64,000 nucleotides of DNA from Podarcis muralis (taxonomy: Eukaryota): positions 7,502,001 to 7,566,000 of the forward strand of contig NC_135662.1 in the NCBI RefSeq assembly GCF_964188315.1, in the 5' to 3' direction. Shown here piece after piece: positions 5,348-53,741 of the stretch; positions within the stretch are counted from its first letter, which is position 1; every line of letters begins with the position of its first letter. The notes beneath the pieces were generated by a model, which made no database searches, was not told the DNA's origin, and saw nothing but the letters and a program-made list of their open reading frames with translations. The position numbers and the translations under genes were made by a program.

Positions 5348-6343
5348 TCACATCCGGGTTTGGACTGGAACTTCTCGTTCCTCTCTGCAGTTTTCCTCCT
5401 CTTTGAAAAGTCTCTGGAGTATGACCTTCATGCTCTCCCTAGATTGAGCCCTCTTGTTTCTCCCAATCAGGAAATAAATCAGTGGGTTAATACTGCTATT
5501 CAGGCAGCTGCATAATAACCCAACTGGTATTGCAAAAAATAAAACATCATAGTCTATAAGTGGAGTGAAAAAACGGATCAATGAAATGCAAGTAAGTGGG
5601 AAAGCTAAGAAGAGGAAGAAGAGGAGGGCAAGCAGGAGGGCTGTTAAAGCTTTTCCCTTCTTCCTCAGTTGTGATCTGAAGTAAACTTTTATAAACAGGA
5701 CCAGAGTGGAAACAGTCATGAGTGGGAGACAAAGTATAGCATTCATTAGAAGCAGATAGAAAAGGGGATTCATTGTATCTCTAAAATGATAAAGAATCAT
5801 GCCGATTACAGTGAGCAGGAAAGAAGTGATCCATATTGTGGCACACACAAGGGTGGAAAAGTGTGGTGGTCGGTGGCATCTATGCCAAAGTGGGAAGACA
5901 GCAGAAACACACCTGTCAATGCTAATGGCTGTCAACAGATATTGACCAGTGTTGTACATGAACAACAACAAATAGTCGAATACTACGAACAAGTTACTAT
6001 ACAAAGGTAAGAATGAAAATAAACTCAAAATTCTCATAATCGAACAACAAGATAAGCTCATGAGAGCCCCAAGGTCAGCAACAGCCAGATGTAGTATGAA
6101 AGTTGTAAAAGGATTCCTCTTCATGCAAAAACTAAGAAACCAGATGACAGTTCCATTCCCCATAAGTCCAAAAATGCTAATAAGTAAAATGGAGATGGAG
6201 ATAAGAATGTCTGCTATATGATATGGTGATAATTCGTGATCGAAACCATCCTGGGGGGTTAGGAAGTCAGTTCCATTTTCTGCTCCAATCTCTTCCAATG
6301 AAGCATTCAAAGTGGACCAGGATCCCGGGCCATCATTGCTCAT
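5348..6343 (-). CDS. MAS-related GPCR (MRGPR family, MRGPRH/MAS1-like), clade 1 copy 1, 331 aa
   Basis: Intact 7TM ORF with GNGTVIW (TM1), LAVAD (TM2), SIDRC (TM3), AFPL in place of CWxP, and NSSINPLIYF (TM7). N-terminal NxS/T sites; polypyrimidine-AG acceptor 40 nt upstream of the ATG. Confidence 0.95.
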   Translation of the reverse strand: MSNDGPGSWSTLNASLEEIGAENGTDFLTPQDGFDHELSPYHIADILISISILLISIFGLMGNGTVIWFLSFCMKRNPFTTFILHLAVADLGALMSLSCCSIMRILSLFSFLPLYSNLFVVFDYLLLFMYNTGQYLLTAISIDRCVSAVFPLWHRCHRPPHFSTLVCATIWITSFLLTVIGMILYHFRDTMNPLFYLLLMNAILCLPLMTVSTLVLFIKVYFRSQLRKKGKALTALLLALLFFLFLAFPLTCISLIRFFTPLIDYDVLFFAIPVGLLCSCLNSSINPLIYFLIGRNKRAQSRESMKVILQRLFKEEENCREEREVPVQTRM

Positions 6344-6383
6344 CTTGCTGGATCTGGACTTTTGGGCTTTTTCTTGTATAGTT

Positions 6384-6801
6384 CTAACAAGAGAAAATAA
6401 ACAAATGTGGAGTATTCAGGAATTCGGGAATCAAAAGCTAGAATGAATTGGGAAGACATTTGTAATTTTATTGTTATTAAAATGTGATTTTGAACAAAAG
6501 TGGATAAATAAAACACAAGTTGAATTGGGATTATTAAGAAATATGAAAATTAGAAGAAGAAGAAACACAATAGATTAGCCAGACAGCAAGATTTTCACCA
6601 TGTGGAATGTATTAGACAAACCATTACTCTATCCTGCCTAGTACTTGCTGCTCTGACTGGATGTGGGAACCAAAAATTCCTTTCGTCTTCACCAGCCATC
6701 CGCCTGGTATCCTTCTAACAGAACACTCCATGGAGTTAGCTTGCCCCACCTATAAGCCAAAGGTGCACAGCATTGCCATTCAGCTACAGATCCCCTCTTA
6801 C
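6384..6801 (-). other. Predicted 5' UTR intron of clade 1 copy 1
   Basis: Donor AAG/GTAAGA at 6801 and acceptor TTTTCTCTTGTTAG at 6384, both conserved in all three units. Confidence 0.6.
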
Positions 6802-7676
6802 CTTTGCTAATGAATGACATCAAAAGTAGCTATTCGCATTGCTCTCAAAAACTTTGGATCAGCATCCCTCCGGCATGGTGAGTGGGAGCAGCAAGTGGTG
6901 CTGGAATAAGCAGGTAATCAGAAGATTTGCAGAAATTTTTAAGACGCCTCATCTGGTTCTTAGCAAGATGTGTAGGATTCTGTCTTCAGTTCTGTGTAAT
7001 CCATTTGCCATCATCATGTGATAAGCTGGTTGCTTTGTGCCTTGGGTCTCAGGATAGCATTTGGCAAACTCAGGAGGAGACTCTTGCCTTCTAAAGTTCA
7101 GTGCACCAAGCAAGCACTCTTGAGAAGAGAGAGTTTGCAAGTGGTAAGCAAGTCCAACTTCTCTTTGTCCCTATCTGGATAAATATCTTTCTTGATTAGA
7201 GTGTCACCTGACCCATTAACAGAAAGACTAACCAGTGTATTCAGAGAGTAATCAGCTTGCGGTTGGTTCTGCTGGGGAAGGACATAGGCTGGGGTGGAGA
7301 AATATATCTGAAGAACAAAAAAGAGAGTCCTGCTAGATCAGTTCAGTGGCCCTTGCAGTCAATTGTCCTGGTCTCACAGTGGCCAAACAGATGCTTCCAG
7401 GAAGCCCACAACAGCTTCTGTACTCTCCTCCCCGGTGATGTTCTGCTGGCAGGCCTTAATCGCCTTAATTTTCCAACCCCCTTGGGAAAACTTTTACATG
7501 TGTGGGAGGCCAATCTGCTTTTTTTGGTGGGGTGTGGGCACACTTCTGTCTGATACTATATGCACCAGTTCTTTAAAGCCTCTATTTATTGATATTGAGT
7601 ATTCTTCATTCCACCTTGGCGACAAGGAAAAAATTAATTCTCAGTCTGAATAAGGCTGCAATCTAGCCAGATCAAG

Positions 7677-7760
<84 letters not shown>

Positions 7761-51555: not shown

Positions 51556-52037
51556 CATAGAATCATAGAATCATAGAGTTGGAAGAGACCACAAGGGCCA
51601 TCGAGTCCAACCCCCTGCCAAGCAGGAAACACCATCAGAGCACTCCTGACATATGGTTGTCAAGCCTCTGCTTAAAGACCTCCAAAGACGGAGACTCCAC
51701 CACACTCCTTGGCAGCAAATTCCACTGTCGAACAGCTCTTACTGTCAGGAAGTTCTTCCTAATGTTTAGGTGGAATCTTCTTTCTTGTAGTTTGGATCCA
51801 TTGCTCCGTGTCCGCTTCTCTGGAGCAGCAGAAAACAACCTTTCTCCCTCCTCTATGTGACATCCTTTTATATATTTGAACATGGCTATCATATCACCCC
51901 TTAACCTCCTCTTCTCCAGGCTAAACATGCCCAGCTCCCTTAGCCATTCCTCATAAGGCATCATTTCCAGGCCTTTGACCATTTTGGTTGCCCTCCTCTG
52001 GACACGTTCCAGTTTGTCAGTGTCCTTCTTGAACTGT
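51556..52037 (-). mobile_element. 5'-truncated CR1 LINE
   Basis: ORF2 C-terminus ([14 protein letters not shown]-type) and (TTCTATGA)n tail. Confidence 0.92.
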
Positions 52038-52439
52038 CAATCAACTCTACAGTAAGGCAGGTGCAGCAGGTGTGGCCATTTTCCCACTGTCTTGTGGAAT
52101 CATTTGCAGTTGATGTGGCCTGATGAAGTGTGCAAGATACTTGCAGCTTTGCATCTGACAATGTGCCATTTGGATCCCTGCCCATCCTAGCTGGTGAACG
52201 CCAATGGAGAAGTGTGTGTGTGTCATTGGGTTCAGGGTTTAGCAAACACTTCATTGTATGATGGTGATAGAGCATTCCATTTTGGGATAAGGTAGTGGAA
52301 AGAGTCATTGTCAAGAGTGTGGTCTCCCTCTCAAACGTGTCTGAAAGCTGTGCCTGTTCTCCCTGCCTTCCGTCTCCCTGGGAATTAATGACAGTTTAAT
52401 CCCCTCCAGCTGTTCCTGGAGGTGACAGATTACCGCAAT

Positions 52440-52550
52440 TTCAATCTGGGTCCAGGACTGAGACACAAGGAGCATGATGCTGCTTCTCTTGGTAGCTTTT
52501 GATAACATTGAACATGATATCCTGCTGCACCAGCTCTGTGGGATGGGTCA
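52440..52550 (+). mobile_element. Old L2 RT relic
   Basis: Translates as LLLVAFDNIEHDILLHQLCGMG, resembling DLSAAFDTIDHNILL. Confidence 0.5.
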
Positions 52551-52775
52551 GATTTAGATAGTCACATTGAAGGCTGATCCTTCAGACCCCACAGCTACGC
52601 TCTATGTTTCTACAGGGCTATCCAAAGTCAATCTATTTGAGTTTTTACAAAGCACAAACAAGAATCCTTAGCACTAGAATGTGGAGCACAGAAGCTCTGT
52701 TGAATTTTATGTTGAGAGAAAGATTGGGTAGAAAAATACTGAATGAAGAATAAATAAACAACACATGCATCATAA

Positions 52776-53741
52776 CTAGGTTTCCAGTTCCTCTCTACTC
52801 TCTCCCTCCTCCACAAAGATTTTCTTTAGTATACTCTCCATGCTTCTCCTAGTATTGTCCCCCCTCCGTCTCCCAACCAGGAAATAGATCAATGGATTAA
52901 CACTGCTGTTTAGGCAGGCACAGAAGTAACCATAACGCATAATATGGGAGGGCAAGTGCTGATTAAGCACTTTCATACAGGAAAAAACATTCAGTGGGAA
53001 AGAAAAAATGAGAAAGAAGAATAGAGTCAGCAAGATGGCTACCAAACGTTTTCCTCGCTGGTATGGTTGTGATTTAAAATAGACTTTGATGAACAGAGTC
53101 AGAGTGGACATAGTTAAGAGTGGGAGACAAATGATGCCATTTATGAAGAACTGCAAGTGTTTTAGGAAATAATATGTAAATTCATGTGTCAAGAAAAGAG
53201 TGAAGTGAATTGCAGGGAGAAGAAAGGACAGGACCCACAACAGGGCAGAGACAGTGCTGGATAAGTGTGTTGGCCGGTGACATCGATACCAAAGTGGGAA
53301 GAGGACAGACACACACCTGTCAATGCTGATGGCTGTCAGCAGAAATTGGCCAACACTGTACGTGAATAGGAAGAGGTCATTGAACAATACACTTATAAGA
53401 TCACGATACAAATTAGTTATGCTCCAGTATATTAGTAGAATACTTTCAACAATGAGCAACCCAAAGTCAGCAGCGGACAGGTTCACAATGTATGTCGAGA
53501 AAGTGCTCCTCTTAATGCGGACGCCAAGCAGCCAGATGACAGTCCCGTTGCCCCACAGCCCAAACATGATGAAGGGAAGAGTGATGGGGAAAAAAATATA
53601 TGTTTCTAAATTATATTTAGCAATTGATCCTGGATCATCATTGTTGGTACCATTGTTTGGAAACTCTGTGCAGTCGTATGTCGCTGGATATCCTTTGCTG
53701 ACATCAAAACGAAGCAAGGATGGGTGAATGAAATTAGCCAT
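52776..53741 (-). CDS. MAS-related GPCR, clade 2 (most divergent), 321 aa from MANFIHP
   Basis: MRG motifs GNGTVIW, LSAAD, SIDRC and NSSVNPLIYF. The start is placed at 53741 because the longer ORF start (53912) lies beyond a splice acceptor at 53788 and inside a MITE. Confidence 0.9.
   Translation of the reverse strand: MANFIHPSLLRFDVSKGYPATYDCTEFPNNGTNNDDPGSIAKYNLETYIFFPITLPFIMFGLWGNGTVIWLLGVRIKRSTFSTYIVNLSAADFGLLIVESILLIYWSITNLYRDLISVLFNDLFLFTYSVGQFLLTAISIDRCVSVLFPLWYRCHRPTHLSSTVSALLWVLSFLLPAIHFTLFLTHEFTYYFLKHLQFFINGIICLPLLTMSTLTLFIKVYFKSQPYQRGKRLVAILLTLFFFLIFSFPLNVFSCMKVLNQHLPSHIMRYGYFCACLNSSVNPLIYFLVGRRRGDNTRRSMESILKKIFVEEGESREELET

Follow-up and report, generated by a model that had tools for sequence, protein, structure and literature searches.

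A MAS-related receptor gene cluster in the lizard Podarcis muralis: a young tandem array beside older paralogues

How does a group of MAS-related receptor genes evolve in a lizard, and are its copies working receptors gained and lost by lineage or only duplicates on their way to decay? The question is raised by a 64-kb stretch of Podarcis muralis DNA (contig NC_135662.1, positions 7,502,001 to 7,566,000; hereafter the window, i.e. the whole stretch analysed), which carries seven G-protein-coupled receptor (GPCR) genes on its minus strand, labelled G1 to G7. The explanation that we favour, at a probability of roughly 85%, is that of a large lineage-specific MRGPR-like cluster in which a young array that turns over (G1-G3) lies beside a stable older block. 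On this view the genes would occupy a 50-kb section of a far larger cluster of their kind on a P. muralis chromosome.

The seven receptor genes and their family

An open reading frame (ORF) scan gives seven uninterrupted minus-strand ORFs of 312-378 amino acids before start correction (5348-6343, 14481-15476, 19950-20945, 26907-27899, 32757-33749, 42154-43092 and 52776-53912), and the coding sequence (CDS) of each of G1-G7 is a single uninterrupted ORF. The true ATGs of G5 (33740), G6 (43086) and G7 (53741) are located between a few and 57 codons into these mechanical ORFs; in G7 a polypyrimidine-AG acceptor is found inside the open frame, upstream of M58. All seven proteins match Pfam 7tm_1 over model positions 1-260 of 260 (5-260 for G6), with E-values of 1e-15 to 1e-20. 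Beyond these genes and a remnant at 38165-38675 on the minus strand, tblastn (E<=5) detects no further receptor-like stretch in the window. The remnant retains only residues ~139-323; it is truncated at the 5' end and spread over three frames with stops.

5348-6343, minus strand: G1, intact MAS-related receptor gene, 331 amino acids, unit A of the young array (ORF; 7tm_1)
14481-15476, minus strand: G2, intact receptor gene, 331 amino acids, unit B (ORF; 7tm_1; 96.4% nucleotide and 92% amino acid identity to G3)
19950-20945, minus strand: G3, intact receptor gene, 331 amino acids, unit C (ORF; 7tm_1; best PDB match MAS1, 1e-45)
26907-27899, minus strand: G4, intact receptor gene, 330 amino acids (ORF; 7tm_1; P. 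raffonei orthologue at 98.6% nucleotide identity, dS 0.023)
32757-33740, minus strand: G5, intact receptor gene, 327 amino acids from the first ATG (ORF, opening mechanically at TTG 33749; P. raffonei orthologue at 97.6% amino acid identity)
38165-38675, minus strand: pseudogene remnant, part from transmembrane helix 4 (TM4) to the C-terminus (tblastn; frameshifts and stops)
42154-43086, minus strand: G6, intact receptor gene, 310 amino acids from the first ATG (ORF; 7tm_1; P. raffonei orthologue at 96.8% amino acid identity over the fetched part)
52776-53741, minus strand: G7, intact receptor gene, 321 amino acids counted from M58 (ORF, in which the frame stays open to 53912; 7tm_1)

The four runs of N in the window (8481-8618, 9174-9306, 47520-47691 and 62624-62880) are all intergenic, and thus none of the reading frames relies on a gap. 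The original prediction, made from the sequence of this stretch, was of seven intact minus-strand receptors of the MAS family and one pseudogene; ORFs, 7tm_1 matches and tblastn bear it out.

Membership of the MAS/MRGPR family is likewise supported by the 7tm_1 matches, by the ranking of PDB sequences and by the NCBI names, which are 'proto-oncogene Mas-like' or 'MRGPR member H-like' here. These sequence comparisons support the assignment of G1-G7 to the class-A GPCRs of this family. G3 and G4, the two proteins used as phmmer queries against PDB, both have human MAS1 as best match (160-164 bits), followed by MRGPRD/E, X1, X4 and X2. Each of the 17 best-ranked distinct sequences is MAS1 or one of MRGPRD/E/X1/X2/X4 (1e-45 to 1e-27), and C3aR, FPR and CMKLR1 rank next, at 1e-21 or weaker.

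In the alignment D2.50, DRC, P5.50, P6.50 and NPxxY are all kept, and position 6.48 holds no Trp: the residues from 6.48 to the conserved P6.50 are A-F-P in G1-G3 and S-F-P in G4-G7. By hand count on the alignment, Phe and not Cys stands 25 residues before R3.50 in G1 and G4; the lack of a Cys at 3.25, i.e. of the canonical disulfide between TM3 and extracellular loop 2 (ECL2), is a trait of the MAS/MRGPR family. Trp6.48 is replaced in the MRGPRX receptors, which have a G6.48/P6.50 motif and a shallow pocket (PMC10435460). Unlike MRGPRX, the lizard genes do not carry the full TM6 kink motif G6.48-x-P6.50-F6.51-G6.52-xx-F/W6.55: positions 6.48-6.52 read A/S-F-P-L-T/N, and 6.55 is S in G1 and Y in G4-G6 (alignment). 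Nor do they have, by approximate numbering, an acidic residue at 4.60.

G3 is identical to a database protein (P0001, P. muralis OZ076961.1, 7.51-7.53 Mb). Its best 120 database matches are all squamate, geckos included, with many copies per species, and the 120th still reaches 261 bits under the scoring scheme that gives MAS1 160-164 bits. Thus there are at least 120 squamate proteins to which G3 is nearer than to any structurally solved human member of the family. For four lacertid species, every listed match with a contig on record sits, within each species, on a single large contig. That the expansion is specific to a lineage, as had been proposed, agrees with these 120 relatives and with the lacertid-only clade that contains G1-G3 (see below). 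Its independence from the mammalian expansions is likely, judging from the score ranking and from the coarse tree of one paper.

Amino acid identity is 83-92% within G1-G3, 48-75% within G4-G7 and 42-49% between the two groups. The two clades of the original prediction are therefore real as groups by identity, but G4-G7 do not form an exclusive clade. In a quick tree G4-G6 are a clade (98), and G7 lies outside a 21-row group with other lacertid genes and one Rhineura gene.

Duplication, turnover and selection in the young array

By self-blastn G1-G3 lie in three tandem units of ~5.4 kb each, the flanks of which are 93-95% identical between units. Such units would have been made by unequal crossing-over.

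2050-2897, minus strand: upstream stretch of one more unit (85-89% identical to the corresponding stretches of units A-C)
2900-8286, minus strand: tandem unit A, G1 and flanks (self-blastn, 93-95% flank identity to units B and C)
8619-17199, minus strand: tandem unit B, G2 and flanks, split at 10874-14119 by a long interspersed nuclear element (LINE) (self-blastn; reverse transcriptase ORF)
17464-22877, minus strand: tandem unit C, G3 and flanks (self-blastn)

Because 2050-2897 is a piece of a further unit, the array continues before the window. The LINE at 10874-14119 (~3.2 kb), downstream of G2, carries a reverse transcriptase ORF (12086-14110, plus strand, 674 amino acids, Pfam RVT_1 5e-39); units A and C lack it, so that its insertion came after the duplication. 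G2 and G3 are separated by a synonymous divergence (dS) of 0.044, and G1 from either of them by 0.09-0.11; these values are 2-5 times that of the G4 orthologues of P. muralis and P. raffonei (0.023). The array is therefore young. Of the very recent tandem triplication first proposed, the tandem duplication, flanks included, is retained; 'very recent' is overstated at a dS of 0.044-0.11 against 0.023, and 'triplication' is an effect of the window.

Whole-gene ratios of non-synonymous to synonymous divergence (dN/dS) among G1-G3 are 0.81-0.94, and the replacements are unevenly distributed. We divided the proteins into an outward half (outer helix halves and extracellular loops) and an inward half (the remaining, G-protein-facing part). 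Variable residues among G1-G3 amount to 45/126 outward versus 14/163 inward (odds ratio 5.9, p = 2e-8), and for G2/G3 alone to 21/126 versus 3/163. The dN/dS values are 1.6-2.7 outward and 0.12-0.40 inward. Since dS is equal in both halves, the pattern is no patchwork of converted tracts. Replacements localised in this way are, as read from the coding sequences, the signature of what would be working receptors with a diversifying ligand pocket. In this subfamily, found only in lacertids, the extracellular half that forms the ligand pocket would be diversifying and the G-protein-facing half conserved.

The syntenic locus of P. raffonei (CM049756.1, 7.69-7.72 Mb; loci L002-L004) contains five tandem genes with the same ~5-kb spacing. 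The flanks of G1 are 95% identical to its positional counterpart there, whereas the CDS shows only 90.8% identity to that counterpart (dS 0.12), against 94.7% to a different P. raffonei gene. The middle units of the young array show only 87-89% identity to P. raffonei. In a bootstrap tree the subfamily of G1-G3 is a clade of lacertids only (100/99). Within it G2 and G3 (pair support 97/90), together with P0002, are a P. muralis-only group; G1 joins P0006 of P. raffonei and not its positional neighbour P0011; and P0016, the positional counterpart of G3, joins P. muralis genes outside the window (96/95). Neither the syntenic comparison nor the bootstrap tree provides a P. raffonei orthologue for G2 or G3. 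As far as these sequences tell, the gene content of the young array turns over between the two congeners, by duplication and loss, by conversion or by both; probably some gene conversion would accompany the duplications and losses.

The strong similarity of G2 and G3 and the want of clean P. raffonei orthologues may alternatively reflect concerted evolution, i.e. interlocus gene conversion between genes that keep their positional orthology, rather than births and deaths. Both species carry equally many genes from the G4 orthologue to the positional orthologue of G1, and the disparity between the flanks and the CDS of G1 points the same way. The position of P0016 among P. muralis genes from outside the window is nevertheless a better fit to differential retention, and the identity of G2 and G3 spans the whole 5.4-kb unit, with no short tract. 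We regard concerted evolution in fixed positions as unlikely, though by no means negligible.

Several observations weigh against the favoured explanation of a turning-over array of working receptors. The whole-gene dN/dS of G1-G3, taken by itself, would fit relaxed constraint. The helix limits on which the outward and inward halves depend are approximate, set from conserved-motif anchors and not from structure, and the significance was computed for the contrast between the halves, not for an outward dN/dS above 1 by itself. Two assembly gaps fall at a unit junction. Lastly no expression was seen. No indexed RNA run contains the stretch, and in four raw-read RNA runs over 29051-35050 (three bulk and one single-cell, of unstated tissue, about 6-13% of each run read) G4 exon 1, G5 exon 1 and the G5 CDS have zero reads, which does not show silence. 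Reads over this interval fall on transposon fragments only (29.7, 30.3-30.8 and 32.1-32.2 kb), and most of them continue into unlike sequence.

From the whole-gene ratio, and from the lack of RNA reads on exons of the neighbouring G4 and G5, one could argue that the young genes G1-G3 are duplicates, functionally redundant or in decay, which evolve by neutral drift and whose frames are intact merely because the copies are young. Neutral drift would not, however, confine replacements so unevenly: the inward dN/dS is low at the same dS as the outward one, G2 and G3, the closest pair by dS, differ at only three inward residues, and all signalling motifs are intact. We consider neutral decay improbable.

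The two gaps of the A/B junction (8481-8618 and 9174-9306) lie beside copies of a ~420-bp repeat (7868-8287 and 8755-9173), so that the number of units there is not certain; the length of the second gap roughly equals that of the corresponding interval in the paralogous unit (122 bp, 17877 to 17999). An assembly artefact, with haplotypes or collapsed or expanded repeats set in tandem, would find its argument in these gaps and the short repeated pieces next to them, but it is hardly tenable given that the units differ by 4-9% in CDS and 5-7% in flanks, that the 3.2-kb LINE is in unit B only, and that the independent P. raffonei assembly shows five genes at the same tandem spacing.

An older P. 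muralis annotation, made on another assembly (P0002, P0004, P0104), differs by 2.4% from G1 and by 4.6% from G5. A P. muralis protein in the database shares 98% identity with G1. P0002 is 8-10% off G3 and G2 and matches neither. This mismatch hints that the copy content or the alleles of the young array may differ between P. muralis individuals or lineages.

The older genes and their upstream block

G4, G5, the remnant and G6 are collinear in P. raffonei, with 95-98% nucleotide identity. The proteins are 97.0% (G4), 97.6% (G5) and 96.8% (G6, over the fetched part) identical to their orthologues, and the G4 pair, with 98.6% nucleotide identity and a dS of 0.023, served as the baseline used above. 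Since the remnant occupies the collinear place in P. raffonei, it predates the split of the two species. This half of the cluster, G4-G6 with the remnant, is stable and one-to-one. Between paralogues dS is 0.45 for G4/G5, 0.54-0.61 for G6 against G4 or G5, and above 1 for G7; pairwise dN/dS among G4-G7 is 0.33-0.47, which at the level of coding sequence indicates purifying selection. G4-G7 and the one old remnant would thus be older paralogues, of which G4-G6 are kept one-to-one in P. raffonei.

Birth-and-death evolution had been put forward for the whole locus. It suits G1-G3, with their species-specific duplicates and missing one-to-one orthologues, but not G4-G6 and the pseudogene, which are one-to-one and collinear. 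The pseudogene is interspersed among intact copies, as in birth-and-death families; it is shared with P. raffonei and so is old.

The original prediction also gave the second group an upstream architecture of its own, and this is what we find: G4-G7 share a block of 450-590 bp, located 0.7-3.7 kb upstream of each ATG in the orientation of the gene, 64-70% identical between genes and with an invariant AAG|GTAGGA splice donor.

28944-29384, minus strand: G4 upstream block, putative promoter and non-coding exon 1, last exon base 29100 (conserved donor)
34480-34993, minus strand: G5 upstream block, last base of putative exon 1 at 34725 (conserved donor)
46198-46791, minus strand: G6 upstream block, last base of putative exon 1 at 46499 (conserved donor)
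55766-56345, minus strand: G7 upstream block, last base of putative exon 1 at 55982 (conserved donor)

A polypyrimidine-AG acceptor lies ~40 nucleotides before the ATG in each of G4-G7, and G1-G3 have their own acceptor, likewise ~40 nucleotides before the ATG. In G4-G6 a TAA immediately before the donor closes the frame compatible with the acceptor, so that exon 1 would be non-coding in these genes. From donor and acceptor we infer spliced gene models for G4-G7, in which a conserved promoter and non-coding first exon would be joined to the coding exon ~40 nucleotides before the ATG.

Two other readings of the block were considered. Against a coding exon 1 in G4-G6 stand the TAA before the donor and the conserved upstream ATG of exon 1, which opens an upstream ORF of only 5-19 codons (G4-G6, read by eye). 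A transposon was rejected: the window holds one copy for each of G4-G7, in the orientation of the gene, and the similarity of the copies is not above that of the CDSs.

Other elements lie around these genes. Upstream of the exon-1 block of G7, a LINE at 57497-59864 (minus strand) has adjacent ORFs for an endonuclease (392 amino acids) and a reverse transcriptase (368 amino acids) and looks fairly young. Direct copies of 483 bp (51555-52037 and 56365-56847, 97.9% identical) lie on either side of G7 together with its putative exon 1, and may represent either two separate young insertions of a repeat or both ends of a single element. Pieces of ~350 bp occur at 28011-28371, 40607-40932, 50861-51193 and 24808-25518, the last as an inverted pair. 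They are found in both orientations and away from genes, and are thus interspersed repeats; one copy falls within the inferred intron of G4, just ~110 bp ahead of the ATG. Trinucleotide microsatellites are common to 24353-24414 and 30547-30596, and RNA reads appear cut at the latter. Searched with Rfam at gathering thresholds, the whole window matches no hammerhead ribozyme family and gives only a borderline tRNA-like match at 40331-40400 (29.1 bits for a cut-off of 29), probably the head of a short interspersed nuclear element (SINE).

Relation to other receptor clusters

By sequence the lizard genes belong to the same GPCR family as the mammalian MRGPR clusters (rodent MrgprA/B/C, primate MRGPRX). 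They have in common with them what would likewise be intronless CDSs, arrays in tandem that are specific to a lineage and interspersed with LINEs and pseudogenes, an extracellular side that changes rapidly, and the absence of Trp at 6.48 with P6.50 kept. Their expansion took place, in contrast, in lacertid and squamate lineages. Human MAS1, the best-scoring solved relative of both groups, is similar in length and shares the DRx and NPxxY framework, but MAS1 is a single conserved gene. As at least 120 squamate proteins outscore it against G3, G1-G7 are no simple MAS1 orthologues.

A large, locally duplicated sauropsid group ('MRGPR1') appears in a cartography of vertebrate GPCRs, in which an Anolis cluster is a possible orthologue of MRGPRH or a possible new subtype, MRGPRH orthology being left open (PMC6504862). 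The genes of the window resemble this reptile cluster near MRGPRH in bearing 'MRGPRH-like' names at NCBI. Unlike the present analysis, that account comes without lacertid data, gene structure, selection analysis or the lacertid-only subfamily of G1-G3. Our literature search found no paper devoted to squamate MRGPRs, and PMC6504862 alone mentions local duplications in sauropsids.

We take the cluster to be an ordinary, already annotated, lineage-specific receptor cluster, which evolves as young receptor clusters usually do. Nearly all work on MRGPRs concerns mammals, in which expansions private to a lineage are the basis of itch, of the modulation of pain and of drug-induced mast-cell reactions. 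Most likely, the lizard proteins work as class-A receptors and would signal, as mammalian MRGPRs do, in response to varied peptide or small-molecule ligands held in a shallow outer pocket. A sensory or immune role, as the original prediction had it, is only an analogy with these mammalian receptors.

Formyl-peptide receptors were co-opted as vomeronasal receptors in rodents. By a parallel with them, the squamate radiation might be an unrecognised chemosensory repertoire, e.g. of vomeronasal, lingual or skin sensory cells, and not a counterpart of the itch and mast-cell receptors; it could be tuned to conspecific gland secretions or to compounds of prey or parasites. This reading draws on the dozens of copies per genome, the private clades at family level and the diversifying pocket, and we think it quite doubtful.

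The practical value of the locus is modest, the genes being annotated already and the pattern expected for such clusters; the contrast between a young array that turns over and a stable older block is a useful detail. The lizard cluster shows a mode of evolution that would be common to the family across amniotes: growth in tandem, changes concentrated in the pocket and conservation of the signalling face. Its copies are natural variants from which one may learn which positions of the pocket set the choice of ligand.

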